NCBI GenBank assembly: GCA_002269645.1
Contig: NIVC01001111.1
Span: forward strand, 186,001-250,000
Length of the DNA stretch: 64,000 bases
Direction: 5' to 3'
Origin: Macrostomum lignano
Taxonomy: Eukaryota
Below are positions 5,095 through 62,876 of the stretch, one piece after another. How positions within the stretch are numbered: position 1 is the first letter of the stretch; the number at the start of each line of letters is the position of its first letter. The translations under genes and the position numbers were made by a program. The notes below the pieces were generated by a model. That model was given only the letters and a program-made list of their open reading frames with translations, did no database searches and was not told the origin of the DNA.

Positions 5095-5163
5095 CTGAAC
5101 TAGAGAGCAGTAGCTCAGGGAACGCGCATAGCCACTGTGTAAAAAAATTCAAGTCGAAGACTT

Positions 5164-14894: not shown

Positions 14895-16688
14895 ATGGAG
14901 GAAGAGTACAGTTTGCCTCCAGATGCATCTGTTGTGCGGCCAACAGTCTCTAGTAGCAGCAACACCACTTCACCAGAGACCGAAAGTTTCTATAGTGAGC
15001 CATTGAAGGCTAGCGGCAGTGGAGTTTTCAAGCATCATCCAGCTAGTCCGTTTGAACTGGTGGCGCAGAAGTCGCCTAACAGTGGCGGGCCATCTGTGGA
15101 AGTTGGCTTTGGTACTGGCGCCAATCATGCTGGGAACAGTGAGGCCAAAGCACCATGCCCCCAACTGAAACCTGTGCACAAAGTTGGAACTGTTGGTTAG
15201 TTTATTTACTATTGATTTTATCTTTCTCTTTCATTATTCTAATCAGACTGGAAATTACTAATTTTTCTATTGATAATAAAATTGCTGTTACAAGACCTTA
15301 CAATCGTGCATTATAGTGTATGTTGACTATAGTTGGAATCCGTTTTCCAAAATTCAAAATTCCATCGTCAAGTCAGTCCCGTTATTAATCATCAAGTCAG
15401 GGTCCCGTTATTAATCATCAAGTCAGGGTCCCGTCATTAATCATCAAGTCAGGGTCCCGTTATTAAGCATCAAGTCAAGATTCCGTCATTAATCATCAAG
15501 TCAGGATCCCGTCATTAAGCATCAAGTCAAGATTCCGTCATTAATCATCAAGTCAGGATCCCGTCATTAAGCATCAAGTCAAGATTACGTCATTAATCAT
15601 CAAGTCAGGATCCCGTCATTAAGCATCAAGTCAAGATTCCGTCATTAATCATCAAGTCAGGATCCCGTCATTAAGCATCAAGTCAAGATCCCGTCATTAA
15701 TCATCAAGTCAGGATCCCGTCATTAAGCATCAAGTCAAGATTACGTCATTAATCATCAAGTCAGGATCCCGTCATTAAGCATCAAGTCAAGATTCCGTCA
15801 TTAATCATCAAGTCAGGATCCCGTCATTCATCATCAAGTCAAGATCCCGTCATTAATCATCAAGTCAAGATCCCGTCATTAATCATCAAGTGAAGATCCC
15901 GTCATTAATCATCAAGTGAAGATCCCGTCATTAATCATCAAGTCAAGATCCCGTCATTAATCATCAATTTAAGATCCCGTCATTAATCATCAAGTCAGGA
16001 TCCCGTCATTAATCATCAAGTCAAGATCCCGTCATTAATCATCAATTTAAGATCCCGTCATTAATCATCAAGTCAAGATCCCGTCATTAATCACCAATTC
16101 AAGATCCCGTCATTAATCATCAAGTCAAGATCCCGTCATTAATTATCAAGTCAGGATCCCGTCATTAATTATCAAGTCAGGATCCCGTCATTCAGAATAT
16201 TTTTTGTCTACCCTGCCTACTCTGCAGCAGCGTCCAGCTGGACCCCAGTCGATCCCAACCTGCCGCTATCCGAGCAGCCCTGGTTCCACCCTGGCCCTGG
16301 CATGGACCGGCAGACCGCTGAGCAGCTTCTCCGGCCCCATCCCGAAGGCGCATTCCTGGTCCGCTGCTGTCAAACAGCTGACAGCTCGGCTGATCAGCAG
16401 CAGCGGCAGTACTCACTGAGCCTGCGCGGCCGTCACGGCCAGCAGTGCATACACATGCGCATCGAGCGCACCCAGCAGGGTCAGTACGTGCTCGGCCAGT
16501 ATTCCCAGCCATTCGCATCCGTGCCGCTAATGATTCGCCACTACGGCGAGCACCTGTTGCCAATTAAAGGCATTGATAGAATTATTCTGGGCATGCCGGT
16601 TGTAGCCAGCGGCAGGTCCGCCACCAAGGACGCCAAATCGGCAGGGGAGCCGCTTGGAGACAATCAGGCTTCAACTACTCAGCTCTAA
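14895..16688 (+). CDS. SH2 adaptor of the SHB/SHD/SHE/SHF family (at least 2 exons, at least 253 aa)
   Basis: Exons 14895-15195 (GT donor, phase 1) and 16228 or 16231-16688. Exon 2 reads VDPNLPLSEQPWFH..MDRQTAEQLL..AFLVR..YSLSL..CIHMRI..YVLGQYSQPFASVP..LPIKG, which is the family signature. Exon 1 carries YxxP motifs. Additional upstream exons are possible. Confidence 0.88.
15367..16192. repeat. 26-bp minisatellite (TCATCAAGTCARGATCCCGTCATTAA)n, ~32 copies, filling the SH2-gene intron
   Basis: Visible 26-bp period with an alternating 52-bp dimer in the 5' half. It ends 35 nt before the acceptor AG. Confidence 0.97.
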
Positions 16689-22006: not shown

Positions 22007-22257
22007 GTGACCCACTGTCTAGCCGGTGACCCACTGTCTACCCGGTGACCCACTGTCTACCCGGTGACCCACTGTCTACCCGGTGACCCACTGTCTAGCC
22101 AGTGACCCACTGTCTACCTGGTGACCCACTGTCTAGCCGGTGACCCACTGTCTACCCGGTGACTCACTGTCTACCTGGTGACCCACTGTCTATAGCCAGT
22201 GACCCACTGTCTACCTGGTGACCCACTGTCTACCCGGTGACCCACTGTCTACCCGGT
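22007..22257. repeat. 19-bp minisatellite (GTGACCCACTGTCTASCCG)n, left part (interrupted by LINE copy 1)
   Basis: About 13 visible units, continuing at 28161 after the retrotransposon. Confidence 0.97.
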
Positions 22258-22501
22258 GCACGCGAAGGCGTATTCAGCATGCCAGTGAAGTATGAGACAG
22301 ACTAGGCCCATGGGCTAAGGTCTGCGATGCTTCACGCCTGCCCCTATCTTCAGCAGGTCAAGGCTGGTGGGAGGTCTGCACCCTCTATTTGCCTCTGGCA
22401 GCCGCAGACCCCCCCCCCCACGCTGTCTCGCAAGTCGACCCAGGGTACTCGTCCCCGCGTGTGTTCAAGGCAGTCCCTAGGGCTGCTGGACAGACTGGGC
22501 T
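22258..22501 (+). ncRNA. Predicted HDV-like self-cleaving ribozyme at the 5' end of LINE copy 1
   Basis: P1 GCACGCG (22258-64) pairs with CGCGTGT (22456-62), giving a G1-U wobble. P3 GGG/CCC closes L3 TACTCGT. P1.1 AC pairs with GT (22463-64). P4 spans 22465-90, the candidate catalytic C is 22491 (CAGA), and P2 is ACCCA/TGGG. The predicted cleavage site coincides with the TSD-defined 5' end. Confidence 0.8.
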
Positions 22502-22777
22502 CCGGCGCTGGCGACCCTATCCAGTGGCTTCGGCCGAATTTGGGTATGCGGGTCTGGCTCGCCAACCTGCAGGCCGTGGTACTGCTCAACGTACTCTCTA
22601 ATGCCTAAGGTGTTGACCGTGCCGATGGGCTGGAAGGCCGGGGAGTAGTCCGGTCGCAAGCGGTCCCCCTCCTGGTGTCGGGCCAGCCTTGAGGGTGTTA
22701 TTGGCCTACTGCCCGGTCAGGTGGAGCGGCCGGGTGGGTACCGCGCCCCTTTGAGGGTAGCCCACCAACCTTTTATC

Positions 22778-24298
22778 ATGGCCTTCGAGCCGACTATGGA
22801 TAAACAAGCTATTTCTAGGGACGGGGACCCTTCTAAACCCCAACCTCAGTCCGAAGGACCGGCCGGCCCTGCTGGCAGATCCCAACCGACTGATTCAACT
22901 GTGGCAAAGGAAGGACCGGCTGGCTCTGCTGGCAGATCCGACCAGAGCTACCAAACTCAAAATACCCTAAGACCTGCCAGCTCCGCTGGTGGATCTAAGG
23001 GAACCGCGAGCTCTGAGCCTAAAGGACCGGCCAAATCTGGCAGATCCGATGAAGCTCAGCGGGCTCGGCTTGAGCGCAAACGCGCTAAACAACGCGCCAA
23101 AAGGCAGGCCAAGAAGGGAGCTGCGGGGGCCAAAGCGGCGGCGTCCACCATGGATGCTGAAGCGACTGGAGTCCCAAGGCAACCAGGCGGGCCGGCCGGT
23201 GGAAGCTCCAGTAGTTCAGCGGCGGCGCTCCCTGGAGCTGCTGCCGCGGCTGCTGAGGCCGAAACCACGGCGCAACAAATGGCCACTGCCAACAAGGAGG
23301 TTCCTTCGGGAGCTACCTTTGCGGCGAAGGCCAAGGCCAAAATCCCGGGAGTGATCATCCAAGGTCGCGACCAGGACTGGACCACTGATCAGCTTCAAAA
23401 AGTGTGGAGTGCTGTTGACTCCTATCTGATTGAGCTGACTGTCGAGGAGGGAATCTCCATCGGCGTTGAGCGGATGGTGCTGCGAAGCACATTCGTTCTT
23501 ATTGCTCCTAGCAGCGAGGAGGACGCTCGGCGGCTGCTCCAGCGGCTACCGACGGTCTCCTTGGATGCTGACCTTGGCGGAGCTCTTTTTCTTCGCGAGG
23601 GCCAGCGTCCAAAGACGATACCCTATGTGGTTTTCGTCCCTGCTAAGAGCACCGCAGCTGGACCAGACGTTATTCGCCGGGTCCTACTGCGTCTGAACCC
23701 CGACCTCCCTGCTAGTGGACTGGTGTATCACCGTAAAGTCCGCAGGGGGGAGACGGGCAACTCAATTGTCCTCGGCCTTTCCAGCACTTGGGCGAGTCGG
23801 TACCCTAATGGATCCTCTTTCCAGCTGGGTGCCCTCAAGCTCAAGTTGCGCCGAGGAAAGTCTGCCAAAGGGAAGGCTACTGCCAACCCCGGCATCTCCG
23901 GCAAGAGCGGGGCGCAGTCTAAGGCCCAAGGAAAGGCGCAAGCCGATCCCAAAGCCAAAGCTGCATCTCGCCCCTCTGCTAGCAGCAGTTCGGCGACCGC
24001 GGTAACGGCTCCGGCCGAGCCCCGGGAACCAAACCTGCCAGTCGGAGAAGGAGTTGAGGACGAGGCCGGGTCTTCGGAATCCGAGCTCTCCTCGGCCACC
24101 TTGGTGGGGTCTGAAGGTAAAGATGCAGGTGAGGAAGCTTCCTCCATCCTGTCATCGGAGCCTGAGGACTCTGCTGGGGGGCCGGTGGGGGTGAGGAGGC
24201 CATGGACGTCGACCAACTCCCATCTCCCAGTCAAGCCCCAGCGGCCTGGGACGAGGACGATCTGTTGTCCAAGTCTCCTTGATGGCCCTGGGCTCTAG
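22778..24298 (+). CDS. LINE copy 1 ORF1 (gag-like nucleic-acid-binding protein, DUF4780-like core, no CCHC)
   Basis: Long ORF with first ATG at 22778. A basic low-complexity N-terminus precedes a core (VIIQG..LLIAPSSEEDARRLL..YVVFVP..VLLRLNPDL..IVLGLS) homologous to copy 2 ORF1. The true C-terminus is probably in the -1 frame, ending at 24282. Confidence 0.85.
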   Translation: MAFEPTMDKQAISRDGDPSKPQPQSEGPAGPAGRSQPTDSTVAKEGPAGSAGRSDQSYQTQNTLRPASSAGGSKGTASSEPKGPAKSGRSDEAQRARLERKRAKQRAKRQAKKGAAGAKAAASTMDAEATGVPRQPGGPAGGSSSSSAAALPGAAAAAAEAETTAQQMATANKEVPSGATFAAKAKAKIPGVIIQGRDQDWTTDQLQKVWSAVDSYLIELTVEEGISIGVERMVLRSTFVLIAPSSEEDARRLLQRLPTVSLDADLGGALFLREGQRPKTIPYVVFVPAKSTAAGPDVIRRVLLRLNPDLPASGLVYHRKVRRGETGNSIVLGLSSTWASRYPNGSSFQLGALKLKLRRGKSAKGKATANPGISGKSGAQSKAQGKAQADPKAKAASRPSASSSSATAVTAPAEPREPNLPVGEGVEDEAGSSESELSSATLVGSEGKDAGEEASSILSSEPEDSAGGPVGVRRPWTSTNSHLPVKPQRPGTRTICCPSLLDGPGL

Positions 24299-24321
24299 CC
24301 AGATATTGCATTTAATACAGT

Positions 24322-27300
24322 ATGACTAAGCTCCACGCTGCCAAAGGAGCGACATTCTGTCTGCAAATAAATTTACAGCATTGCGTATCTGCGTCAGTAA
24401 ATCTGATGAAGATTGCTGAGCTGTACAGGCCAGGCCTCATCCTGATCCAGGAACCCTGGATGCGCAACGGTAAGTTGCCCAACATTCCCTCTGGCTACTC
24501 TGATTTTTATGTGTGTGGCCCGGGGAACAGCCGCCCTAGAGCGGCTATCCTCGCTGCTAGCCATCTCCAGGCTTGGCTGAGGACTGATCTCTCTGATGGA
24601 GACCTTTGCGTCATCCAATCTAATCATTTCTCTCCGCGTACGTGTCTTGTTGCCTCGGTTTATATCCCAGGCGACAGAGACCCTGCTCCCGAGAGTTTAC
24701 TGCGCCTTGCGCAGTACTGCGAGTCCCAGAACGCTGAGCTGTGCTTAGGGGGCGACCTCAACGCGCACCACAAGCACTGGGGCAGCAAAGATACCAACAC
24801 TAGAGGAGAGGAGCTTCTGGCCCTCATCTCTAACACAAACCTCATGCTCTGCAACCGCGGCAGCACTCCTACCTTTAATAATGGCAGATGGACCGAGGTC
24901 CTCGACGCCACACTCGTTACCCCAAGACTCTTTGACAGAGTCAAGGAGTGGAGAGTCTGGTCTGAGGAGCCCTCCCTGTCTGACCACTGCTTTATCGCCT
25001 TTAATATCGCGGACACTAAAACCCAGTCTCCGATCACTTGGAGACGCAATATCCGCAACAGTGATTGGGCGGCCTACAAGGCTGCCCTTGATCTGCACCT
25101 GCAGGAACTCACGGACTTACGTCCGATTGAGACCTGCGAGGATGTGGATCATATGGCTGAGACGCTGACAGGTTGCATTATTGCAGCCTACGAAGCGGCT
25201 TGTCCTGCTCGCGCCTACAGAGGCAAGACCTCGGCGCCGTGGTGGAACCCGGAGCTGGGGAAACTCAGGCGGAAGGCCAAAAGCCTTCATCGCCGTGCCA
25301 TGAAGACCGGAAACCCGGAGGACATGGAGCTTTTCCGGCAAGCCTCCCGCAATTTCAAATCTGAAGTGCGCAAGGCCAAGGAATGTAAGTGGCGCCAATT
25401 CTGCAATGAATTGGATCAAGACAGACCTACTTCTAGGCTTGTCAAGGCCCTTACAATGGACAAAATGTCCAAATTAGCCATGATCAAAAAAGATGATGGC
25501 TCTCTTACTAAAGACCCTGAAGAAGTGCTTCAGCATATGCTTAGCACATTCTTCCCGAGGGTACCTACTGCTAGACCGGAGCCCAACCATTCGATGGATG
25601 GAGCCACCCTAGCGGCGGGCATTGTCACTGAAGACCTAATCGCTCGTGCGGTCAGAACCTTCAAACCCTTCAAATCTCCTGGACCTGATGGTATCTACCC
25701 TGTTCTCCTTCGTGAAGCAGCCAAGATACCCTCGTTCCTGAGACTCACCCGCAATCTTATGCGGGCCTCTATCCAGCTGGGATACGTTCCCAAAAGCTGG
25801 ACTGAAGCTCGAGTAGTCTTTATTCCCAAACCTGGGAAGGGTGACTACCAAAGCGTCAAGGCCTTCCGGCCAATTAGCTTAACGTCAGCAATGCTTAAGC
25901 TCACTGAGAGGCTTATTCTCTGGCGGCTGCTCTCCTGCGAGCTGACAGCGATGCCCCTCAGCAATAATCAGCACGCCTTCCGTACCGGGAGGTCGACTGA
26001 CAGCGCCCTGCATGCGATTGTCGAAAAGATTGAACGGGCGGTACTGGGTGACGGTTACGCCCTGGCTCTCTTTCTTGACATTGTTGGCGCCTTCGACAAC
26101 GTTATCTTTGAAGCGTTTCAGAGGGCCCTTCAAAATCGCAAAGCTCATGCTACCCTCATACGGTGGATCATGTACATGATCTCCAACCGTACGGTCACTG
26201 CCCAACTTCTTGGGCAAACTGCCTCCACCAGAGTCTGTAAGGGTGGTCCCCAAGGCGGAGTCCTCACCCCGACGCTCTGGAACCTGGTCATGGACGCTCT
26301 TCTGAGTGACTCCCGACCTGACCCCGTCTTCAAAGTCGGGTATGCTGATGACGTCACGGCCATTGTGGCAGGACCGTCTCCCAGCACGCTCAGGGATCTG
26401 ATGCAGAGCTTTATCCGCAAAGCAGAATCCTGGGCCAATGACAATGGTTTGGAACTCTCTGAGCCCAAAACCGTTGCCATTATGTTTACCAGCAGACTAC
26501 GCTGGAACATAAGTCCTCTGCAGCTCTACGGCAGAGATATTGCCTTCGCGCACCAGACCAGATGTCTCGGGGTCACACTTGACCACCGGCTCAACTGGTC
26601 CTTCCATGTGAAAGCAAAAGCTAAGCGTGCCTCAGCCATCCTGGCCCAGCTCCGACGAGCACTTGGCACTTCTTGGGGTCTATCCCCAAAGCGGCTTTGG
26701 TGGATCTATACTTCCGTAGTTAGACCTGCCATTACGTACGCCTCTGTTGTCTGGGTTAGCGCTACCCAGGTCAAAAGCCATGCAGACCTGCTCAACACGA
26801 TCCAAGGCAGAGCGTGTAGGCTCATCTGCAACGCCACCAGGTCCACGCCCTTTGCTGGCATGGGGGCCTTTCTTAATCTTCCGCCTCTTGACCTCTTCAT
26901 CAGGGGTGAGGCGGCTAGAACGACGCGGCGTCTAATTGATGCCGGCGTCAAATTCATTTACATGAGAGCACCTGCTAAGCGGAACCTTGTCCCGCATAGC
27001 GATCTGTGCCTCAACTTTCTCAACGAGTGTCAGGCCAATCGCGTCTTCACCGATGGCATTGCCTCAACGCTCAACCTGAGACAGCGCTACTCCGTAGCTA
27101 TCGACTCGCGCGATAACATCAATGACCATTGGAACCCTGGTGAGCTTCATTGCTACACCGACGGTTCTAAGCAGTCAGCCAACACCGGCTTTGGTGTTGG
27201 AATCTTTCTGAACGGGAGGGTCATCGCTACCCACGCTCAATACACTGGGGTCAACTCCAGTGTTTTCCAAAATGAAGTTCTGGCCATCAGCTCCTGCACT

Positions 27301-28062
27301 GCAGAGCTTCTCACCACTGGCGTTACTGGTAAGAACATCATTTTCCATTCGGACAGCCAAGCTGCCTTGCACGCCATCAGTGGCTGCAGCACCAACTCTG
27401 CTACAGTCCTTGACTGTATCAAACTCCTCAATGTGTTGGGTTCCGCCAACAAAATTACCCTTAAGTGGGTTCCGGGGCATGTGGGGATCCGAGGAAATGA
27501 GTTGGCTGACACCCTTGCAAAAGTTGGTGCCTCCGGCTCCTCTCTCGGCCCCGAACCTCTTGTCCCGATTCCTGGCTGTGTCATCGACTCGCGCATCAAA
27601 GCGTGGATCAGGACTCAGCACCGCTCGACTTGGGCGAACCGCACGAACTGCAGGCAATCCAGAGGCGCTGTCCCTCAGCCCTCTCACCAGCTCCGGAAGC
27701 TCCTCTTGCGCCTCTCGCGCAGAGACATCCGGGCTGCCACCATGACCCTCTCTGGTCACGGCTGCTTCTCCAGGCACCAGTACCTGCAGGGCAACGCCAC
27801 CAACGCCACCTGTAGTTTCTGCAACTCAGGTGACGAAACCGCTGAGCATTTCGTCAGCATCTGTCCCGCCTTCACGCGGGCCAGACTCACTTACCTCGGG
27901 CCACACACATCTATTACTGAAGCGTGCAAACCCGAAAACTTTAATCAGCTCATGCGCTACCTTCGGGCCACCCGCAGGGCTGAACTCTCCTTTCCAGAGA
28001 GCACCATAGCTGCTGGCGACACTGGGGGACATCCCTGGGCGGCGCCAACCCTCCGTCCATAG
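24322..28062 (+). CDS. LINE copy 1 ORF2 pol: APE endonuclease, reverse transcriptase, RNase H, CCHC finger (1246 aa, intact)
   Basis: APE motifs QEPW, GDLNAHH and SDH. RT motifs RPISL, FLDIVGAFD, PQGGVL and YADD. RNase H motifs YTDGSK, FQNEVLAI, HSDSQ and WVPGHVGIRGNELAD. C-terminal C-x2-C-x8-H-x4-C. Confidence 0.97.
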   Translation: MTKLHAAKGATFCLQINLQHCVSASVNLMKIAELYRPGLILIQEPWMRNGKLPNIPSGYSDFYVCGPGNSRPRAAILAASHLQAWLRTDLSDGDLCVIQSNHFSPRTCLVASVYIPGDRDPAPESLLRLAQYCESQNAELCLGGDLNAHHKHWGSKDTNTRGEELLALISNTNLMLCNRGSTPTFNNGRWTEVLDATLVTPRLFDRVKEWRVWSEEPSLSDHCFIAFNIADTKTQSPITWRRNIRNSDWAAYKAALDLHLQELTDLRPIETCEDVDHMAETLTGCIIAAYEAACPARAYRGKTSAPWWNPELGKLRRKAKSLHRRAMKTGNPEDMELFRQASRNFKSEVRKAKECKWRQFCNELDQDRPTSRLVKALTMDKMSKLAMIKKDDGSLTKDPEEVLQHMLSTFFPRVPTARPEPNHSMDGATLAAGIVTEDLIARAVRTFKPFKSPGPDGIYPVLLREAAKIPSFLRLTRNLMRASIQLGYVPKSWTEARVVFIPKPGKGDYQSVKAFRPISLTSAMLKLTERLILWRLLSCELTAMPLSNNQHAFRTGRSTDSALHAIVEKIERAVLGDGYALALFLDIVGAFDNVIFEAFQRALQNRKAHATLIRWIMYMISNRTVTAQLLGQTASTRVCKGGPQGGVLTPTLWNLVMDALLSDSRPDPVFKVGYADDVTAIVAGPSPSTLRDLMQSFIRKAESWANDNGLELSEPKTVAIMFTSRLRWNISPLQLYGRDIAFAHQTRCLGVTLDHRLNWSFHVKAKAKRASAILAQLRRALGTSWGLSPKRLWWIYTSVVRPAITYASVVWVSATQVKSHADLLNTIQGRACRLICNATRSTPFAGMGAFLNLPPLDLFIRGEAARTTRRLIDAGVKFIYMRAPAKRNLVPHSDLCLNFLNECQANRVFTDGIASTLNLRQRYSVAIDSRDNINDHWNPGELHCYTDGSKQSANTGFGVGIFLNGRVIATHAQYTGVNSSVFQNEVLAISSCTAELLTTGVTGKNIIFHSDSQAALHAISGCSTNSATVLDCIKLLNVLGSANKITLKWVPGHVGIRGNELADTLAKVGASGSSLGPEPLVPIPGCVIDSRIKAWIRTQHRSTWANRTNCRQSRGAVPQPSHQLRKLLLRLSRRDIRAATMTLSGHGCFSRHQYLQGNATNATCSFCNSGDETAEHFVSICPAFTRARLTYLGPHTSITEACKPENFNQLMRYLRATRRAELSFPESTIAAGDTGGHPWAAPTLRP

Positions 28063-28160
28063 CGACGCGTCGGCCGTTCAGGGACTAGCGGAATGGGCGC
28101 CCGCGCCTTCCCGCTGTGTCCCCTCCGGGACAGCCCTGCAGCTAAGTCAAGTAAGTCAAG

Positions 28161-29637
28161 ACCCGGTGACCCACTGTCTACCCGGTGACCCACTGTCTAC
28201 CTGGTGACCCACTGTCTACCCGGTGACCCACTGTCTAGCCGGTGACCCACTGTCTAGCCGGTGAACCACTGTCTAGCCGGTGACCCACTGTCTACCTGGT
28301 GACCCACTGTCTACCCGGTGACCCACTGTCTACCTGGTGATCCACTGTCTACCCGGTGACCCACTGTCTAGCCGGTGACCCACTGTCTACCTGGTGATCC
28401 ACTGTCTACCCGGTGACCCACTGTCTAGCCGGTGACCCACTGTCTACCTGGTGATCCACTGTCTACCCGGTGACCCACTGTCTAGCCGGTGACCCACTGT
28501 CTACCTGGTGATCCACTGTCTAGCCGGTGACCCACTGTCTAGCCGGTGACCCACTGTCTAGCCGGTGACCCACTGTCTAGCCGGTGCCCGGTGACCCACT
28601 GTCTAGCCGGTGACCCACTGTCTAGCCGGTACCCAGTGACCCACTGTCTAGCCGGTACCCAGTGACCCACTGTCTAGCCGGTGACCCACTGTCTAGCCGG
28701 TGTCTAGCCGGTGACCCACTGTCTACCTGGTGATCCACTGTCTACCCGGTGACCCACTGTCTAGCCGGTGCCCGGTGACCCACTGTCTAGCCGGTGACCC
28801 ACTGTCTAGCCGGTACCCAGTGACCCACTGTCTAGCCGGTACCCAGTGACCCACTGTCTAGCCGGTGACCCACTGTCTAGCCGGTGTCTAGCCGGTGACC
28901 CACTGTCTACCTGGTGATCCACTGTCTACCCGGTGACCCACTGTCTAGCCGGTGACCCACTGTCTAGCCGGTGCCCGGTGACCCACTGTCTAGCCGGTGA
29001 CCCACTGTCTAGCCGGTACCCAGTGACCCACTGTCTAGCCGGTGACCCACTGTCTAGCCGGTGTCTAGCCGGTGACCTACTGTCTACCTGGTGATCCACT
29101 GTCTACCCGGTGACCCACTGTCTAGCCGGTGACCCACTGTCTAGCCGGTGCCCGGTGACCCACTGTCTAGCCGGTGACCCACTGTCTAGCCGGTACCCAG
29201 TGACCCACTGTCTAGCCGGTGACCCACTGTCTAGCCGGTGTCTAGCCGGTGACCCCCTGTCTTGCCGGTGTCTAGCCGGTGACCCCCTGTCTAGCCGGTG
29301 TCTAGCCGGTGACCCCCTGTCTAGCCGGTGTCTAGCCGGTGACCCCCTGTCTAGCCGGTGTCTAGCCGGTGACCCCCTGTCTAGCCGGTGTCTAGCCGGT
29401 GACCCCCTGTCTAGCCGGTGTCTAGCTGGTGACCCCCTGTCTAGCCGGTGTCTAGCCGGTAACCCCCTGTCTTGCCGGTGTCTAGCCGGTGACCCCCTGT
29501 CTAGCCGGTGTCTAGCCGGTGACCCCTGTCTAGCCGGTGTCTAGCCGGTAACCCCCTGTCTAGCCGGTGTCTAGCCGGTGACCCCCTGTCTAGCCGGTGT
29601 CTAGCCGGTGACCCACTGTCTAGCCGGTGACCCACTC
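28161..29637. repeat. 19-bp minisatellite, right part, grading into 27/30-bp derivative units
   Basis: The same unit continues after the LINE. From ~29230 it becomes a regular 30-mer (GACCCCCTGTCTAGCCGGTGTCTAGCCGGT). Confidence 0.97.
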
Positions 29638-35480: not shown

Positions 35481-38400
35481 TTACGCAGCCTCCTGGTGCA
35501 GCTCGGGAAACAGTCTGAGTAGAAGAGGGTCGACCAGAGTAAACAGCAGCTGCTTGTTGACCCTAGGATACTGCAGCAGGTCGTGCAGACGGCTCAACGT
35601 CGCCTCGGCAGAGTCCGCGCCAAGCGCTTGCGACACGTCTGAGTAAGGGTAAAAAGCAAGTAGTAAAATTTTTCATAAAATTGTTGTGATACATCAAAGT
35701 CACGATTTGAATTATGACATCCCCTATTCTGTTAATTGAAATCCTCATTCTGCCAATTGAAATCCCACTATGCTCATCAATATCCTCATTCGGAGGATTA
35801 CCAAATCAATCTTATGACCCTTAACGCTTCAAGTTTCAGAGCCACAATTTTCATGCGCGCAACAAATAAAGAACTGAGAGAGGACAACCACAATAAGGAG
35901 ACTCACACACGCTGGAGCAGGCAGTTTTCAGGGCTGCCAAAGCGTCGGCTCGTCGTTTCTGTTTGTCGCCGTCGCCGGGAGCGACGCGACGCTCCGGGAA
36001 GAAGATTAAATCTAGGGTGGCGCGCATTGGCAGTTTGAAATTCGATAAGCTACTACTTTAAACTACTATAATACTAGTATGAGTAGTCAAGTAGCAATAC
36101 GAGCTCGGGCTCACCCCTGAAGAGTTGCACAATGGGCACAGCCCTGTAGTCGCGAGTGAGTTCCAGCACCTTGGCGTTGATGAAATCGCGAATCAGTCGG
36201 TCAATCAGAGGACGCGCCAGCGGCCGGAGGCCCACAAGCAGGTGGCAGAGCCAGCGCCTCCACCAGGGGATGTCTTCGCTGCCGCCGCCGACGCTTGCAA
36301 AGACGACTCGCTCCAGCAGGAACAGGGCCAAGTCGTAGATGCCGAACACGCGGGGCACGGACACCGGGCAGGGGGCGGTCAGGCTGGGCGACTGGTCGGG
36401 TGATAGCGCCGCGTTGTTCCAGAATAGGTAATTGTGCAGCTGCAGCCGGATGGCGGTTTAGAGAGCGATTTTTATTGTGGGGTTGGAGGCGATTTTTATT
36501 GTGGGTTGGAGGCGATTTTTATTGTGGTTGGAGGCGATTTTTATTGTGGTTGGAGGCGATTTTTATTGTGGGGTTGGAGGCGATTTTTATTGTGGTTGGA
36601 GGCGATTTTTATTGTGGTTGGAGGCGATTTTTATTGTGGTTGGAGGCGATTTTTATTGTGGGGTTGGAGGCGATTTTTATTGTGGTTGGAGGCAATTTTT
36701 ATTGTGGGGTTGGAGGCGATTTTTATTGTGGGGTTGGAGGCGATTTTTATTGTGGTTGGAGGCAATTTTTATTGTGGGAGGAAGTGGAGGCTATTTTTTG
36801 GGGGGGGTTGGAGGCGATTTTTATTGTGGTTAGAGGCGATTTTTATTGTGGGGTTAAAGGCAATTTTTTTGTGGTTGGAGGCGATTTTTATTGTGGGGGA
36901 AGTGGAGAATTTTTATTGTGGGGGAAGTGGAGGATTTTTATTGGGGGGGGGGGGTTGGAGGCGATTTTTAATGAGGATCAGGGGTCGATTTTTTTAGAGG
37001 ATTGGAGGCGATTTTATTAGGAGTTGGAAGCGATTTTTATTGTGGTGTTGGAGTTTACTTTATTCGAGGGAGGTTTGGAGGTAATTTTTACTGGGTGTTA
37101 GGGCGATTTTTAATAGGTTTGGAAGCGATTTTCATTAGGATTATTGAGAAAGTTTCGATTCGGGTTTTCATGGCGGGTTTTGACATCGCATACGAGTAGT
37201 ACGAGAATAACAATCTGAGGTCAAATTGCAAACAAACAAGTTAACTGAGCAACTAACCCGACTCTGCTTGAGCGATTCGACGCCGCCGCCGCCGCCGCCG
37301 CCGCCGCCGCTAGTACCGCCGCGCGGCGCCAACGGCTCGGGCGTGGGCGCCTGAGTAGAAGCCAACAGACCGGGCAGGAAATCCTTAGCCAAAAAGAAGC
37401 CGCGCCGTTGAAACTTAGACGTGAGCCGGTTGAGACTGAGATCGGGCAGCAGGCTGGTCTCGAACTCCTGCAGCTGGTCGGACAGGAATAGGCGGAGCAG
37501 CTGAGACTGGCGCAGCAGCGGCTTGGCCAGCAGGGCGCGCAGGAAGCTCTCCAGCTCGGCCCGCTTCCCGGCTAGGAACTCCCTGCTTGAGCTGCCAATC
37601 AGCCGCTTCGACTGCAGCGGCAGGTCGCCGAGAGCGGCGCCGTGAAATTCACGAAGCTTCTCCTCCAGCACGTAGAATTCCGAATACTTTCTGTACACCT
37701 TCCAGCTGTCGCCGCCGTTCTCTGCCGGGCAGCTAACGTGGATGACGTATTTCATCACTCCGCTGGACAGCTGGCCGTCGTCGGCCGAATTCTCGCCGAG
37801 GCCGGTGACCGTCACGCGCCAGTTGGCCATGTCGCTTTGTCGACGCTGCTGCTGTTGTTGCTGCCGTTGACGAGAGCTGGCGGACAGAACCGAGGATGGC
37901 GGGCGGGTCAGCTGGTCGGCTAGAGAGGCGGCTTCCGGATACTCGGACGCGATGGTTGCCGGGTCGTTGCTAGGCAACATTGCCGCACCGCCAAGCGTAG
38001 AGTCCTCCAGTGCCTCCTCAGCTGGCAGCAAAGGAGGCAGCGACGAAGGGTGCTGGGCGGTGCGGACGGCCTGGCCGTCAACTATGGCCGACTGCTGCTG
38101 GCGGAAGAATCGAGACCGGCCTTGACGCTGCGGCGGCGCCAGGGAGCTGGCGAGTGTGAAAGAATAGACGATGGCTTTCAGCGGCTTGAACATACTGTTG
38201 GGCTGCTGATGAGAGACCGATCAGGAGGGTAGGTAGGGAGGCTACTGAGGGACCGATCAGGGGGTAGGGAGGCTACTGAGGGACTGATCAGGGGGTAGGT
38301 AGGGAGGCTACTGAGGGACTGATCAGGGGGTAGGGAGGCTACTGAGGGACTGATCAGGGGGTAGGGAGGCTACTGAGGGACTGATCAGGGGGTAGGGAGG

Positions 38401-54679: not shown

Positions 54680-56931
54680 GATTCGGACACATAGTGGTCA
54701 GATTCGGACACAGAGAGATCAGATTCGGACACAGAGTGATCAGATTCGGTCACAGTGATCAGATTCGGACACATAGTGATCAGATTCGGACACAGAGTGA
54801 TCAGATTCGGACACAGTGATCAGATTCGGACACATAGTGATCAGATTCGGACACATAGTGATCAGATTCACACAGAGTGACCAGATTCGGACACGGAGTA
54901 ATCAGATTCACACAGAGTGACCAGATTCGGACACAGAGTGATCAGATTCGGACACAGAGTGATCAGCTTCGGACACAGAGTGATCAGATTCGGACACAGA
55001 GTGATCAGATTCGGACACAGAGTGACCAGATTCGGACACAAAGTGATCAGATTCGGACACAGAGTGATCAGATTCGGACACAGTGATCAGATTCGGACAC
55101 ATAGTGATCAGATTCAGACACATAGTGATCAGATTCGGACACAGTGATCAGATTCGGACACATAGTGATCAGATTCGGACACATAGTGATCAGATTCGGA
55201 CACATAGTGAGCAGATTCGGACACAGAGTGACCAGATTCGGACACATAGTGATCAGATTCGGACACATAGTGATCAGATTCGGACACAGAGTGATCAGAT
55301 TCGGACACGGAGTAATCAGATTCACACAAAGTGACTAGATTCGGACACAAAGTGATCAGTTCGGACACAGGGTCATCAGATTCGGACACAGGGTCATCAG
55401 ATTCGGACACAGAGTGACTAGATTCGGACACAGAGTAATCAGATTCACACAGAGTGACCAGATTCGGACACAGAGTAATCAGATTCGGACACAGAGTGAC
55501 CAGATTCGTACACAGAGTGATCAGATTCGGACACAGAGTGATCAGATTCGGACACAGTGATCAGATTCGGACACATAGTGATCAGATTCGGACACATAGT
55601 GATCAGATTCGGACACAGAGTGATCAGATTCGGACACAGTGATCAGATTCGGACACAGAGTGATCAGATTCGGACACATAGTGATCAGATTCGGACACAG
55701 AGTAATCAGATTCACACAGAGTGACCAGATTCGGACACGGAGTAATCAGATTCACACAGAGTGACCAGATTCGGACACAGAGTGATCAGATTCGGACACA
55801 GAGTGATCAGCTTCGGACACAGAGTGATCAGATTCGGACACAGAGTGATCAGATTCGGACACAGAGTGACCAGATTCGGACACAAAGTGATCAGATTCGG
55901 ACACAGAGTGATCAGATTCGGACACAGTGATCAGATTCGGACACATAGTGATCAGATTCGGACACAGAGTAATCAGATTCACACAGAGTGACCAGATTCG
56001 GACGCGGAGTAATCAGATTCACACAGAGTGACCAGATTCGGACACAGAGTGATCAGATTCGGACACAGAGTGATCAGCTTCGGACACAGAGTGATCAGAT
56101 TCGGACACAGAGTGATCAGATTCGGACACAGAGTGACCAGATTCGGACACAAAGTGATCAGATTCGGACACAGAGTGATCAGATTCGGACACAGTGATCA
56201 GATTCGGACACATAGTGATCAGATTCAGACACATAGTGATCAGATTCGGACACAGAGTAATCAGATTCACACAGAGTGACCAGATTCGGACACAGAGTAA
56301 TCAGATTCGGACACAGAGTGATCAGCTTCGGACACAGAGTGATCAGATTCGGACACAGAGTGATCAGATTCGGACACAGAGTGACTAGATTCGGACACAA
56401 AGTGATCAGATTCGGACACAGAGTGACCAGATTCGGACACAAAGTGATCAGATTCGGACACAGAGTGATCAGATTCGGACACAGAGTGATCAGATTCGGA
56501 CACGGAGTAATCAGATTCACACAAAGTGACTAGATTCGGACACAAAGTGATCAGTTCGGACACAGGGTCATCAGATTCGGACACAGAGTGACTAGATTCG
56601 GACACAGAGTAATCAGATTCACACAGAGTGACCAGATTCGGACACATAGTGATCAGTTCGGACACAGGGTCATCAGATTCGGATACAGAGTGACCAGATT
56701 CGGACACAAAGTGATCAGATTCGGACACATAGTGAGCAGATTCGGACACAGAGTGATCAGATTCGGACACATAGTGATCAGATTCGGACACATAGTGATC
56801 AGATTCGGACACAGAGTGATCAGATTCGGACACGGAGTAATCAGATTCACACAAAGTGACTAGATTCGGACACAAAGTGATCAGTTCGGACACAGGGTCA
56901 TCAGATTCGGACACAGAGTGACTAGATTCGG
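54680..56931. repeat. 21-bp minisatellite (GTGATCAGATTCGGACACAGA)n, >100 copies, left part
   Basis: Visible 21-bp period with 19-bp variants. Variant blocks recur at offsets of ~267 and ~844 bp. Confidence 0.97.
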
Positions 56932-57177
56932 GCACGCGAAGGTGTATTCAGCACGCCAGTGAAGTATGAGACAGACCAGGCCTAAGGGCTACGGTCTGCG
57001 ATGCTTCACGCCTGCCCCTATATTCAGCAGGTCAAGGCTGGAGAGGGAGGTCTGCACCCGCTATTTGCCACTGGCAGCCGCAGACCCCCCCCCTCACGCT
57101 GTTTCACAAGTCGACCCAGGGTACTCGTCCCCGCGTGTGTTCAAGGCAGACCCTAGGGCTGCTGGACAGACTGGGCT
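56932..57177 (+). ncRNA. Predicted HDV-like ribozyme at the 5' end of LINE copy 2
   Basis: P1 56932-38/57132-38, P3 57119-21/57129-31, L3 TACTCGT, P1.1 GT 57139-40, candidate catalytic C 57167. The core is identical to copy 1 except for one P4 base. Confidence 0.8.
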
Positions 57178-57403
57178 CCGACGCTGGCGACCCATCCAGT
57201 GGCTTCGGCCGAATTTGGGTATGCGGGTCTGGCTTGCCAGCCTGCAGGCCGTGGTACTGCTTAACGTACCCCCTAATGCCTAAGGTGTTTGACCGTGCCG
57301 ATGGGCTGGAAGGCCGGGGGGTTGTCCGGTCGCTAGCGGTCCTTTTCTTTTTCTTCTTTCCTCTTTCTTTTGTGACTCAGCTCACTCCTTCCCGCTTTCA
57401 GCT

Positions 57404-58869
57404 ATGGCGTCATCCGCCTCTTTAACCCCCGCTGAAGCCGGGGCCCCGGCAACTCCGGCCGGTGACTCTGGCACCAGCGCCGCCCCACCGGGGGCAGATG
57501 GGCTTGCCGCCGGCTCGGCTGGTGACATGCCCGCACGCGCAACCGGGCCCTCCGCTGAAGCCCGACGCACCCGCAACCAACGCCGCAACGAGCGGCGACG
57601 GCGACTACGGGGTACTGCGGGCCGGCCACCGGCGGAAGGGGAACCTAGGGAGGGCGAGGCTGCTGTTGGGCCGAAAGGAACCACAGCAACCCCTGCCCCC
57701 CAGGATACAACCCCCGCTGGTGAGCCACCCAGTATACCTGCTACAAGCGCGGCCGGGCCTTCGGGAACCGCCGCCACCAACTACGCCTCAAAGGTCAAGC
57801 TCCAACCGGCGGTCATCGTCTTCGGGGAAGAGCAGGACCTCACGGCCGACGAGCTCGACAGTGCCTGGCGCACCATCGATGCTGCGCTCATCGACCAGCT
57901 CCTGGCGGGCCGCCCTGTGAGCGTGGTCAAGTCTGCCAAGACCGACGGCTGCATCTTCATCTGGTGCAGCTCGGAGGAGAGCAGCCGCAATCTACGCGAG
58001 CTTCTGCCAAAGCTGAACTGGCCCAAGAAGCTCGGCAAGCTCGTCTTCGCCAGCGAGGGCGAACGACAGAAGACCCAGCGCTTTCGCGTCTGGATCCCGG
58101 CCGGCAGTGCCATTAAGTCCGGAGATCAGCTTAGGCAAATATTGCTAAAGCTGCACCCCGACCTTAAGGTCAACGGGCTCCTACACCACGCCACTTCCCG
58201 CAAGGAGAAGGGGGCTACGGTGATCCTAGGGCTCTCTGATGACTGGGCTAAGCGCTTGCCGCCTAAGTCCACAATTCATATTGGTCTGACTCAGCTGACC
58301 ATCCTCCGTTGCGAGGAGCGGAAAGCTGATGAAGCCAAGAATGCCAAAGCTTCCGAAACCGGAACTGGGGCCCAGGCTCCTCCGGCAAAGAAGCCGAGGC
58401 AAACGGCCGATCCTATGCCCGGTAAGGCAGTTCGCGCTGCTGAAACCGGAAACGCAATCGCAGACCCGCCAGGAGCACCCGGAGGTCCGGCCTGATCCAG
58501 CGCGCGCTGGACCAGGCCAAGAACCTTCGTGCGCATCGTGAGCGGGCCCGCGCTTCTCGCGCTCCACCCCAACAGCCAGAAGGCCAGACTCTAAGCGGGG
58601 AGGCTCCGACCGACTGGTTCGAGTCTGTGACTCACCAGGAGGCTGGCGCCACCCGCATCGACCTGACCGACGAGGCAGAGGGGACGGGCAGTGACAGCAC
58701 CGAAGCACGCAGGAGAGGCGACGGTAACGTCCACGCTGGGCTCACGTCCGCGGAGGACTCCACAGCCACCCTAACTGCTGAGGACGCTGAAACTCCCATG
58801 GAGGTCTGCGGGTCACCCACCACTGAAAAGGAGGAGGATGACCTGCTCAACGATTCCCCAACTGCGTGA
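57404..58869 (+). CDS. LINE copy 2 ORF1 (DUF4780-like core), split by a -1 frameshift near 58445-58455
   Basis: ORF 57404-58495 is followed by a -1 frame that is open from 58444 to 58869. That frame encodes a basic then acidic tail ending MEV..EDDLLNDSPTA, matching the copy 1 tail. Confidence 0.82.
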
Positions 58870-58871
58870 TA

Positions 58872-61800
58872 ATGATCAGCAACCAGGGAATCCATTGCCT
58901 GCAGATTAATCTGCAGCACTGCGTCGCAGCCTCGGTCAACCTTATGCGTTACGCCGAGCTCGACAAGCCGGGGCTCATCCTCGTCCAGGAACCCTGGACT
59001 CTCAGAGGTAAGCCTCAAAACGCCCCTGCTGGCTACAATTGTTTTTATACTTACCCTCGCGAGGCCAACCAGCCTCCCAGAGCTTGCATCTTTGCGAGCA
59101 AAACGCTCAGTGCGTGGCTCAGATCGGACCTGTCCAACAGGGACATCTGCGTCATCCAATCCGAGGACCTTCTTCCTGGGAAGACCACCCTCATTGCCTC
59201 GGTTTACCTACCAGGCGATGCTGCGGTCGTCCCCAGAGCCCTCGCTACGCTGGTAGAGCTCTGCTCTGCCAAAAACTACGAGCTCATGGTTGCCGGCGAC
59301 ATCAACGCCCACCACACTCACTGGGGCAGCACTGGCATTAATCAGAGAGGCGAAGACCTCCTAGCCTACGTTGCCTCTACGACCCTCGAGTTCTGCAACT
59401 CTGGGTCCACCCCTACCTTTGACAACGGACGGTGGTCGGAGGTGATCGACGCTACGCTCGCAACGCCCAGACTCTACCAGAGTATTGGGGCGTGGCGGGT
59501 GCTTCCAGTGTCCTCACTATCGGATCACAAGTTCATCTCCTTCAACCTAATGGCCGCGCGTAGCGCAACTCGTGTTATGTGGAGACGGAACGCCAGAAAT
59601 ACGGATTGGGAAACCTTCGGGCTCGCCCTGAAGGAATTCCATCGGTCTCCTGGCCAACCATCCACGATCACGTCGTGCCGAGAGGCGGATGAGTGCGCGA
59701 CTGTTTTGACAGAGACGCTAACCGCCGCCTTTGAGGCGTCCTGCCCTTTAAAAGCCTATAAAGGGAAAAAATCGGCGCCGTGGTGGAATCCCGAGCTCGG
59801 CAACCTCCGTCGCAGGGCTAAGAGACTCCACCGCAGAGCAACTAAAACTAAGAGCCCTGCAGACCAAACCGCCTATCATGAAGCAATTCATGAGTTTAAA
59901 AGGCAGGTTAGGAATGCAAAGGCTCAAAAATGGCGACAATACTGTGAGGAGCTAGAGGGCTCACGCCCCACCTCCAGAGTTGTGAAAGCGCTCACGCTGG
60001 ACAAAATGTCTAAGCTCTCCTCGGTCAAACGCACCGACGGTACGTCCACGGACAACCCAGGGGAAACGCTTGATGTAATGCTCACTGCGTTTTTCCCTAA
60101 CGAGCCAGCTAACCAGACCACTCCGGATCACTCGGAGGGAGGTCACGCGCTGGCTGCATCTATCATCACGGAGGACCGCATTGTGAGAGCGGCAAATTCC
60201 TTCAAGCCTTTCAAAGCCCCAGGACCCGACGGCATTGTACCGGCCCTTCTAAGAGAGGCGGTTAAATGCCCAGGCTTCCTGCGCAAACTTTGCAGCCTTC
60301 TTCGGGCATGCATCACGCTTGGTTATGTCCCGCAGGCATGGACCGAGGCAAAGGTGATCTTTATCCCTAAGCCAGGCCGCCCGGACTACCATTCTATCAA
60401 ATCCTTCAGACCGATCAGCTTGACCTCCTCCCTGGTCAAGCTGATGGAGAGACTGGTGCTTTGGCGCCTTCTCTCTGTTGAGCTGAAGAACAAACCTCTC
60501 AGCGAGAACCAGCACGCTTTTCGGGCGGGTCGCTCCACTGAAAGCGCGCTGCACGTCCTGGTCGATAAACTCGAGAAGGCCGTGCTTGGTAGTGGCTTTG
60601 CTCTGGGGATCTTCCTGGACATCATTGGCGCCTTCGATAACGTCCTCTTTGAGGCGTTCCGAAGAGCTCTTTGTGAGAGGCTAACGCACTCACATCTCAC
60701 CAGATGGATCATGTACATGATCAGCCATCGCACGGCCACCGCCAGTCTGCTGGGCTACCAGAGGACGGTCCCCGTCTGCAAAGGTAGCCCGCAAGGTGGG
60801 GTGCTGTCTCCAGTTCTCTGGAATATGGTCATCGATGAGCTCCTCCGGGATGTTCGGCCTGACCCCATTCTGAAAGTTGGATATGCGGACGATGTCACCG
60901 CGGTGGCATCTGGTCCGTCCCCTGATACCCTCAGGGACCTTCTTCAGAACTTCATCTACGCTGCTGAGCAATGGGCGGACCGCTGTGGTTTAAGGCTCTC
61001 TGAGACTAAGACCGCAGCGATCATGTTCACCAGCAGGACCAAGTGGCAGATTCGGCCGCTCACGCTTTACGGAAGGGAAATCCCCTTCTGCAAGCAGACT
61101 AAATGTCTGGGTATTACCCTGGACCACAGGCTGAACTGGTCTCCCCACGTTCAAACAAAAGCCAAAAAGGCCTTCGCAGTCCTCGCGCAATTGCGCAGGG
61201 CCGTCGGCACCACCTGGGGGCTCACCCCCAAGCGCCTCTGGTGGATCTACACTGCAATGGTTAGGCCCGCTATCTCGTATGGCGGCCTGATCTGGGCTAG
61301 CGCCCTGCAGATAAAGACCTGTCTAGAGGCTCTCAGGAGAGCGCAAGGGCGCGCTTGTCGCACGATCATGAGCGCCCCTCCGTCTGCTCCTTACGATGGC
61401 CTCAACGCCTTCCTCAACATTCCTCCGCTGGACATCTTTGTCCGCAGGGAAGCGGCTAAGACTGCCCGCCGTCTAGCTGACGCTGGCATTCGAATCCAGC
61501 CCCATAGGGCCATGGCTAAGCGCAAGCTTCTGCCCCACGCTGACCTCTGCCTCAAGGACTTGAGAGACAGCGGCGGGCTCCACGTCCTATCTGACGGCGA
61601 ACCCCGCACTCTCAACCTCTTTCAGCGCTACAAGGTCACCATCCCCTCTAGGGATGCTGCCAATGACCACTGGAATTTCCAGGAGGTCCATTGCTACACG
61701 GACGGATCCATCAAAGACGGTCGCGCCGGCTTTGGGGTCTGCATCATCATCAACGGCCGCGTAATTGCCACGCATGCCCAGCACACTGGTAGACTCTCCA

Positions 61801-62575
61801 CAGTCTTCCAGAACGAAGTCCTTGCCATCAGCTCTTGCGCTGCAGAGCTAAACGCCAAGGTTACGAGAGGAAAGACTATTGTCATCCACTCCGACAGCCA
61901 AGCGGCCTTACAGGCCCTTTGCCACACCACAACGAACTCCCGGACAGTCGCCGACTGCGCCCGGCAGCTCAACCTCCTGGCCAGAAGCAATACTGTCAGG
62001 CTGAAGTGGATCCCAGGGCACGCAGGGTTTCCGGGGAACGAGCTGGCAGACACCCTCGCCAAGAGGGGCGGCTCTGGCTCTTTTTTCGGCCCTGCCCCCT
62101 GGTCCCTATGCCCTTGACAGTCATCAATCGTCAGATCGACGACTGGGCTGACTCCCTCCACAGGGACAGATGGGCGGGCACCCAAAACTGCCGGCAATCT
62201 CGTGCCGCGGTTCCTTGCCCGTCTCACAGGCTCAGAAACATCCTTCTGAACCAGAATCGGAAGGATATTCGAGCCCTTGTCATGACCCTTACCGGCCATG
62301 GCTACCTCGCCAGGCACTGCTTCCTCCGAGGCGACCTCGAGAGCGAAATTTGCCCCTTTTGCGAGTGCGACAATGAAGATGCTCAGCACTTTGTCTGTCA
62401 CTGCCCTTTCTTTAACAGAGACCGGCTACGCTACCTCGGGCCGAACCCGTCCATTGACGAGGTTTGCCAGCCCGACAGCATCCCACGGCTCATCCAGTTC
62501 CTTCGGGCGACTAGACGAGCCAGTTTCTTCCCAACGGAAGATCACGCTGCAGGACGGACCGGCGGACCACCCTGA
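58872..62575 (+). CDS. LINE copy 2 ORF2 pol (APE-RT-RNase H-CCHC), one -1 frameshift at the C5 run 62095-62099
   Basis: ORF 58866-62117 (first ATG 58872) continues in ORF 61835-62575. Adding one C restores GPAPLVPMP.., collinear with copy 1 GPEPLVPIP. YADD, YTDGS and CPFC-x8-H-x4-C are present. Confidence 0.93.
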
Positions 62576-62688
62576 CCGGCCCCACGCCTCTGCCTGTCTG
62601 CGGGCCTTCAGGGGCTAGCGGAATGGGCGACCCTCGCCTCCCCGCTGTGTCTACGGACCACCCTGCAGCTAAGTCAAGTAAGTCAAAG

Positions 62689-62830: not shown

Positions 62831-62876
62831 GTTGTCAGAAATTTAATCAAGGTCTGCACCACTGACGCGAGGTGCA

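Follow-up and report, generated by a model that had tools for sequence, protein, structure and literature searches.

The 64,000-nucleotide (nt) stretch of Macrostomum lignano DNA analyzed here (the window; contig NIVC01001111.1, positions 186,001 to 250,000, assembly GCA_002269645.1) carries two retrotransposons of the kind lacking long terminal repeats (non-LTR), E1 (22258-28160) and E2 (56932-62688). The first ~242 nt of each element very probably form a self-cleaving ribozyme with the nested double pseudoknot of the hepatitis delta virus (HDV) class, predicted from the sequence to cut immediately 5' of element base 1 (Table 1). The elements have an architecture of the I/LOA/R1 type among long interspersed nuclear elements (LINEs), with an apurinic/apyrimidinic (AP) endonuclease, a reverse transcriptase (RT) and an RNase H in open reading frame 2 (ORF2), a separate ORF1, and target-site duplications (TSDs) of 7 bp in E1 and 11 bp in E2, each in phase with the tandem array that hosts the element. 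The ORF2 of E1 matches the Pfam families Exo_endo_phos(_2), RVT_1 and RNase_H, and its ORF1 has no Pfam match. Both E1 proteins are 76-98% identical to M. lignano entries in UniProt and metaclust, with no record of the exact ORF2 sequence in an exact look-up, and homology searches with ORF1 (single sequence, then profile) yielded just three entries, all chimeric M. lignano records in UniProt, and no additional 5' untranslated regions (UTRs). In E2, ORF2 changes frame once, near 62090-62100 (tblastn frame 3 to frame 2), and E2 is therefore probably a dead copy, whereas E1 keeps both ORFs intact. The two elements share 60% of the amino acids (aa) of ORF2 and 37% of those of the ORF1 core, and represent different subfamilies.

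Homology between E1 and E2 begins exactly at G22258/G56932, and in both copies the G.U that opens helix P1 involves the very base that the TSDs define as the first of the element. An earlier reading made without database searches (the sequence-only reading) had placed the predicted scissile bond at this boundary in both copies, and the placement holds. In E2 the TSD is unambiguous and element base 1 is G56932, corresponding to G22258; in E1 the boundary is ambiguous at G22258, since the array repeat would also supply a G.

The helices follow one another in the order P1, J1/2, P2, P3, L3, P3', P1', P1.1', P4, J4/2, P2' in E1 and E2, as well as in the homologue described below, and the cores of E1 and E2 are identical. 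L3 opens with U and carries C5-G6, while its positions 2-3 pair as P1.1 with the bases that follow P1'. The predicted catalytic residue stands at the junction of P4 and J4/2 in both copies (C22491-A-G-A in E1), with an extra C ahead of P2. P4 of E1 starts with UCAA, at the place of GCAA in the homologue and in the consensus of the Faecalibacterium prausnitzii HDV ribozyme family, RF02682; the genomic HDV ribozyme also has GCAA at this position. The sole helix-disrupting difference between E1 and E2, U22474A, falls in P4, an element that is highly variable in R2 ribozymes and missing in some species (PMC3774820). All of the parts named by the sequence-only reading (P1, P3, L3, P1.1, J4/2 and P2) were found in both copies, and the multi-hairpin insert that it had estimated at ~170 nt measures 174 nt and holds three hairpins.

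The evidence for conserved pairing comes from L001, a 6492-nt Logan contig (ERR14788467) that was found solely through ORF2 protein homology (57% aa identity to E1) and has an ORF1 of 525 aa; the contigs of two other close ORF2 matches, P0004 and P0005, are cut off inside ORF1. The 5' UTR of L001 is collinear with that of E1, with BLASTN aligning 41 nt only (88% identity), and contains the core at the homologous place, with P1 GCCUGC/GCAGGC (6 bp), P3 GGG/CCC, L3 UCUCCGU, a P1.1 made of U-A and C-G (UC/AG), and P2 CUCAGA/UCUGAG. A MAFFT alignment of E1, E2 and L001 misaligned the core, and the pairs were compared helix by helix by hand and script. Among the 41 pairs compared between E1 and L001, 23 are unchanged, 3 carry a one-sided change, 14 show compensatory double changes and 1 is lost. 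Seven of the compensatory changes lie in the core (two each in P1, P1.1 and P2, and one at the base of P4), as against one one-sided change and one lost pair (P1 pair 7) in the core helices. The HDV-like fold put forward by the sequence-only reading is thus borne out by compensation in P1, P1.1, P2 and the base of P4, together with the retained U and CG of L3; of the three helices in which that reading had called for covariation, P1 and P1.1 covary, and P3 is unchanged and shows none.

The first base of the L001 contig is ribozyme G1 itself (GCCUGC), with nothing upstream, and at its other end the contig continues for ~540 nt beyond the 3' end of the element (5950-6492), into a non-repetitive flank, not an array, that contains an antisense ORF. 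If ERR14788467 is an RNA data set, this asymmetry would fit a contig derived from a transcript that was processed at its 5' end and read through at its 3' end.

Table 1. Positions of the two elements, their predicted ribozymes and their surroundings in the window (positions given for L001 are those of its own contig).
Feature	Position	Strand	Details
E1 host array	22007-22257 and 28161-29629		19-mer GTGACCCACTGTCTACCCG
E1 5' TSD	22251..22257	+	ACCCGGT; last bases of upstream 19-mer array; repeated at 28161-28167, in phase
E1 ribozyme (predicted)	22258-22499	+	first 242 nt of element
P1, 5' strand	22258..22264	+	GCACGCG; pairs with 22456-22462; predicted scissile bond 5' of G22258, element base 1
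J1/2 peripheral domain	22265..22438	+	174 nt (178 nt counting P2 5' strand)
J1/2 closing stems	22268-70/22429-31 and 22275-78/22422-25	+	from minimum free energy (MFE) folds
J1/2 hairpin A	22285-22335	+	MFE folds; E2 56959-57009, L001 27-78
J1/2 hairpin B	22336-22358	+	MFE folds
J1/2 hairpin C	22362-22419	+	MFE folds
P2, 5' strand	22439..22442	+	CCCA; pairs with UGGG 22496-99; L001 counterpart CUCAGA/UCUGAG
P3	22443-45 / 22453-55	+	GGG/CCC; encloses L3; unchanged in L001
L3	22446-52	+	UACUCGU; positions 2-3 (A22447, C22448) form P1.1
P1, 3' strand	22456-22462	+	CGCGUGU; first pair G22258.U22462; covaries in L001
P1.1, 3' strand	22463-22464	+	GU; pairs C22448-G22463, A22447-U22464
P4	22465..22490	+	U22465-A22490, C22466-G22489, AA/G internal loop, hairpin 22469-22487
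J4/2	22491..22495	+	predicted catalytic C22491, then A-G-A, spacer C22495; fits C-N-R-A
P2, 3' strand	22496..22499	+	UGGG; 3' end of ribozyme
Shared 5' module	E1 22258..22666 / E2 56932-57342	+	93% identity, ~410 nt; ribozyme plus ~165 nt of further conserved 5' UTR
E1 ORF1	22778..24298	+	ATG 22778, inside open frame starting 22721
E1 ORF2, intact	24322..28062	+	1246 aa; AP endonuclease, RT, RNase H (Pfam, homologues)
E1 3' UTR	28063..28160	+	ends in (UAAGUCAAG)x2, then TSD 28161-67, then remaining 19-mer array to 29629
E2 host array	54680-56931 and 62689-62839		21-mer GATTCGGACACAGAGTGATCA
E2 5' TSD	56921..56931	+	ACTAGATTCGG; end of 21-mer array; repeated at 62689-62699
E2 ribozyme (predicted)	56932..57175	+	P1 56932-38/57132-38; P2 57115-18/57172-75; P3 57119-21/57129-31; L3 57122-28; P1.1 57123-24/57139-40; P4 57141-66; predicted catalytic C57167
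E2 body	57404..62688	+	ORF1 57404-58495; ORF2 about 58866-62590; then 3' UTR
3' UTR element	E1 28063-28160; E2 62590-62688; L001 5850-5965		stem AGCGG...CCGCU around AAUGGGCG
Host exon-like ORFs	6735-7469; 37168-38193	-	ArfGap and PX domains

A metagenome scan with the ORF2 alignment retrieved 80 more distant loci (28-40% aa identity). In descriptor scans, L004/L060, L010, L018 and L029 (33-40% aa identity) showed a canonical HDV-like ribozyme that lies ahead of ORF1 on the sense strand; L004 and L060 are one locus, leaving at least four distinct ribozyme-bearing relatives. These share P3 ACC/GGU, an L3 of the form UC(C/U)NCGU and a J4/2 of the form G-C-N-R-A (G-CUGA, G-CCAA or G-CUAA). In L004, P1 is GGGGGGG/CCCCCCC, L3 UCUACGU, P2 12 bp long and J4/2 CUGA, with a J1/2 of 141 nt; the J1/2 of L010, L018 and L029 measures 166, 14 and 243 nt, respectively. 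L018 was matched over the full length of two Rfam models, in both cases starting at P1 and below threshold (RF02682, 25.7 bits with a gathering threshold of 44, and RF01787, 20.4 bits). Across E1, E2, L001 and the four relatives, as well as in the RF02682 consensus, L3 keeps U1 and C5-G6 (UACUCGU in E1 and E2, UCUCCGU in L001, and UCUACGU, UCCACGUU and UCCUCGU in the relatives), the positions that work on R2 ribozymes reported as conserved or important (PMC3774820). Two further relatives, L084 (35% identical) and L085 (34%), carry the Pfam domain DUF4780 in ORF1 (927-2582 and 1619-3400, respectively).

The 3' half of the ribozyme could also be drawn differently, as the sequence-only reading had suggested. 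In that version the catalytic residue would be C22535 (CGAA), P2 would be ACCCA 22438-42/UGGGU 22541-45, and P4 would become a ~70-nt branched domain (22465-22534). CGAA is the canonical HDV J4/2, this P2 (5 bp, or 6 with a G.U) is longer than CCCA/UGGG, and neither segment differs between E1 and E2; however, the counterpart stretch of L001, GGCUAAACCGGGU, has no complement beside P3, a 2-nt spacer (UU) separates J4/2 from P2, and C22535, as read from the sequence, could be tied up in a GGC-UUCG-GCC tetraloop hairpin. With no counterpart of its P2 in L001 this arrangement was rejected, and we consider it very unlikely. The model with C22491 (CAGA) and P2 CCCA/UGGG is favoured instead, because only this P2 covaries in L001. 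It also yields the HDV-type succession of P1.1, NCAA, P4, purines and C, which reads GU-UCAA...GGA-CAGA in E1, AG-GCAA...AG-CUGC in L001, AG-UAA...G-CUGA in L004, GG-UUAA...G-CCAA in L010, GG-AAA...G-CUAA in L018 and AG-GCAA...G-CUAA in the RF02682 consensus.

In MFE folds, the J1/2 domain adopts a closed three-hairpin architecture that is alike in E1, E2 and L001. Its closing stem changes from GCG/CGC in E1 to GUG/CAC in E2 through C22269U with G22430A, a compensatory pair among the few differences between the two copies, and compensatory changes between E1 and L001 are found in hairpins A and C as well. In these folds the stem would keep P1 and P2 joined at their distal ends, and in this it resembles the 'pinch' that accelerates large HDV-like ribozymes, in which peripheral domains in J1/2 are activating (Webb et al. 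2016; PMC4908430). Hairpin A is the region aligned by BLASTN between E1 and L001. It contains an invariant asymmetric internal loop, UAUGAGA/CGAUG (GA in both strands), and an invariant tip, AGGCCCAWGGGCUAAGG, and its sequence stayed fixed while the catalytic helices drifted with compensation. Such sequence conservation is not accounted for by a 'pinch' on P1 and P2, and hairpin A may be a protein-binding or tertiary-contact motif, or a ligand site. No Rfam family matched hairpin A, pattern scans for its motif gave zero matches in metagenome, prokaryote-genome and viral collections, and the only real match of the 5' UTRs in a BLASTN search of 83 fetched loci was hairpin A of L001. A 16-nt match in L004/L060 lies inside ORF1 coding sequence and was treated as chance.

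Conservation between E1 and E2 extends past the ribozyme to a sharp breakpoint, beyond which a polypyrimidine tract follows in E2, while the collinearity of E1 with L001 continues to the ATG. The two copies differ by ~7% within this 5' module, versus ~40% in the ORF2 protein and ~63% in the ORF1 protein, and this comparison of sequences suggests that LINE lineages recently exchanged the 5' UTR that holds the ribozyme. One could go further and picture the 410-nt module as an exchangeable cassette among divergent LINE lineages of one genome, with hairpin A binding a protein or making a tertiary contact that activates the large HDV-like ribozyme or couples it to retrotransposition, and the whole forming a distinct, flatworm-centred 'peripheral-domain' subclass that serves array-transcribed elements dwelling in satellite arrays; we regard this extended proposal as speculative and, taken as a whole, rather unlikely.

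Several observations weigh against a functional ribozyme in E1 and E2. The fold is not statistically meaningful in itself: every helix that the sequence-only reading had read directly from the letters is present, but a loose descriptor of the fold (7-bp P1, 3-bp P3, 7-nt L3, 2-bp P1.1, J1/2 of at most 260 nt, CNRA and a P2 of at least 4 bp) performs at chance level, with 23 matches on both strands of the window versus 11.95 per block-shuffled window, and 4 versus 1.9 when G1.U is demanded. No Rfam ribozyme matched, either at the gathering threshold across the whole window or at E<=10 in 22150-22750, and the covariance models HDV_ribozyme, CPEB3, drz-agam and HDV-F-prausnitzii do not recognize the E1 region; a plausible cause is the 174-nt J1/2, a loop that these models do not span. 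The MFE fold of the whole E1 ribozyme is no better than that of shuffled sequences (z = -1.36), while that of L001 contains P1. P2, already singled out as the weakest part by the sequence-only reading, is just 4 bp long in E1 and E2, and the spacer C22495 between it and J4/2 could pair with G22443 instead. In L001, J4/2 reads CUGC, with C in place of the usual final A, and covariation comes essentially from this single independent homologue. The ribozymes of the four distant relatives were chosen by a descriptor that demands pairing, so that their independent evidence consists of position, strand, the shared P3/L3 sequence and the Rfam match, and not of the pairing itself. With the same descriptor, no core was found in L084-L086 (35% relatives), and the ribozyme may therefore be patchily distributed across the wider clade.

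With ~12 loose matches per shuffled window, a permissive descriptor with a free 170-nt loop might simply happen to fit the start of an element. What exceeds chance is not the fold but the coincidence with the boundary, the L3 signature and the covariation. A strict core (L3 of the form U...CG., Watson-Crick P3 and P1.1, and a 7-bp P1) occurs on the plus strand of the window at 22258 and 56932 only, with an expectation of 0.575 per shuffled window (both strands), or 4.5e-6 per start position. Its coincidence with the TSD-defined first base is highly non-random, and L001 independently has the core at its own base 1, altered by compensatory changes. A chance resemblance is therefore extremely improbable.

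A second explanation would be a conserved, structured 5' UTR without catalysis, whose long-range helices (P1-like, P2-like and the J1/2 domain) would act as an internal promoter, as an element resembling an internal ribosome entry site, or as a binding site for the element's own proteins; the exact 5' end would then stem from precise initiation, and the likeness to HDV would be superficial or that of a decayed relic. The chance-level loose matches, the missing Rfam match, the short P2 and the J4/2 of L001 all speak for this explanation, as do the conserved sequence of hairpin A, a hint of a sequence-specific ligand, and the equal conservation of the 5' module for ~165 nt past the ribozyme. However, it does not explain why L3 should keep U1 and C5-G6 while its positions 2-3 change in concert with the two bases that follow P1, nor the C at the junction of P4 and J4/2 in E1, E2, L001 and the relatives, nor the canonical HDV-like ribozymes at the same place in those relatives. 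We therefore consider a purely non-catalytic UTR improbable, though less so than the two preceding alternatives. By analogy with the 5' end of L1Tc, Pr77, which is promoter and ribozyme at once (PMC3383444), a promoter may coexist with a ribozyme in E1 and E2, and these two readings need not be mutually exclusive.

Catalysis is inferred here, as are co-transcription and any part played in translation or in binding proteins; on this view the 5' end of the elements most likely arises as follows. The LINE would be transcribed within a longer read-through RNA, initiated in the surrounding arrays or at upstream promoters. In this RNA the ribozyme would fold through its 7-bp P1, the C-G and A-U pairs of P1.1, P3, L3, P4 and P2 CCCA/UGGG, and C22491 would act as general acid in cleaving the bond 5' of G22258 (G56932 in E2). 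The upstream host sequence would thus be removed, leaving an RNA whose first nucleotide is element base 1 and carries a 5'-OH. Full-length target-primed reverse transcription (TPRT) of the processed RNA would then recreate the exact 5' end, and the TSD boundary would coincide with the scissile bond because TPRT copies the end of the processed RNA.

The surroundings of the elements are those of a satellite-rich, animal-like region, with more than 20 tandem arrays of 14-60 bp units detected in the window by Tandem Repeats Finder; arrays unrelated to E1 and E2 reach ~110 copies. Between the repeats the window is ordinary host DNA with genes, to judge from the exon-like ORFs that encode ArfGap and PX domains. 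The host arrays of E1 and E2 flank their element on both sides in phase and share its TSD, so the elements were inserted into pre-existing arrays, and the possibility that the arrays are 3' tails made by the elements was rejected. None of the other arrays in the window (e.g. 4368-5099, 15364-16192, 40013-41557 and 43725-44983) is preceded by a 3' end of the E1/E2 family, and these are therefore not tails of that family either. Both elements (2/2) sit inside arrays even though arrays make up only ~20% of the window, which hints at a preference for arrays or at survival there, with two insertions to judge from. At their 3' ends both elements carry CUGCAGCUAAGUCAAGUAAGUCAA, and E1, E2 and L001 have a 3' UTR element in common, the conserved stem of Table 1; the terminal 9-mer UAAGUCAAG, present in two copies in each of E1 and E2, is part of it. 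The reverse transcriptase likely recognizes this conserved element when TPRT begins.

If cleavage occurs as predicted, a free-living flatworm and a family of two-ORF LINEs bearing RNase H would join the elements whose 5' end is generated by an HDV-like ribozyme of their own. The E1/E2 ribozyme, with its three-hairpin domain, A-U pair in P1.1 and short P2, is a natural large-J1/2 variant in which the support of a weak core by peripheral domains could usefully be studied, and in genome annotation the ribozyme core would give a precise mark of full-length copies. In M. lignano, which serves as a transgenic model of regeneration, the ribozyme offers a testable account of how clean RNAs could come from LINEs embedded in transcribed satellites. 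The exchange of 5' modules between LINE lineages is an interesting case, and the large peripheral domain is well-supported.

HDV-like ribozymes are known at the exact 5' end of R4, Dong, baggins, L1Tc and RTE elements, with a J1/2 of 23 to >700 nt and a P1 of 6-7 bp (PMC3774820), and their role in freeing the element RNA has been documented for these elements and for R2 (PMC3774820, PMC3185411). In R2, R4 and Dong, as would be the case in E1 and E2, the element RNA is released from a co-transcript by a double pseudoknot at its 5' end with a 6-7 bp P1; the ribozymes have a large, variable J1/2 and conserve the C and G of L3 and the catalytic C. In R4 and Dong cleavage also falls exactly at the element junction, and Dong likewise sits in a simple (TAA) repeat. 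R2-type elements have a single ORF and a restriction-like endonuclease, whereas E1 and E2 have two ORFs, an AP endonuclease and RNase H; the targets of E1 and E2 are 19-21-bp tandem arrays and those of R2, R4 and Dong ribosomal DNA or TAA repeats. E1 and E2 further differ from these three in P3 GGG/CCC, in the A-U of P1.1, and in the sequence-conserved hairpin within J1/2. The ribozymes of Baggins1 (LOA clade) and RTE (drz-Agam-2), in the summary of Ruminski et al. 2011 given in PMC3774820, belong to AP endonuclease-type LINEs and lie at the exact 5' terminus as in E1 and E2. Their ribozymes show no sequence similarity to those of E1 and E2, and no Rfam drz-agam match was found at 22258. Baggins also encodes an RNase H, as do E1 and E2.

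In fold, the large HDV-like ribozymes described in PMC4908430 are similar in having a closed J1/2 helix that joins the distal ends of P1 and P2; the 174-nt three-hairpin junction of E1 and E2, with one hairpin conserved in sequence across 57%-identical elements, is unlike those cases. The F. prausnitzii ribozyme (RF02682) and the genomic HDV ribozyme display the same motif order (P3, L3 (UCUaCGU), P3', P1', a 2-nt P1.1, (G/U)CAA, P4 and G-C-U-A-A), but RF02682 has a J1/2 of ~11 nt and P3 ACC/GGU, versus 174 nt and GGG/CCC in E1, which has no match to that model. L1Tc too has a LINE 5'-end ribozyme that processes co-transcripts (L1TcRz/Pr77; PMC3185411, PMC3383444), a compact 77-nt one that doubles as promoter. 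Flatworm precedents are the known planarian R2 ribozyme (PMC3774820) and the 5'-end ribozyme of Schistosoma mansoni LINEs, the latter of a twister-variant class (PMC8501958). The sequence-only reading had called the concept established, the AC/GU P1.1 rare and both this variant and the host possibly new. The P1.1 is a compensatory pair relative to L001, but hardly a striking rarity: it is UC/AG in L001 and L004 and also varies in L1Tc-type ribozymes (PMC4035085), so that a P1.1 containing A-U is a covariant within the known range and not a new principle. No paper linking HDV-like ribozymes with Macrostomum was found in the searched literature. The concept, established since 2010-2011, is thus unchanged; what E1 and E2 add to the known systems is the host, the element family and the unusually large structured insert.

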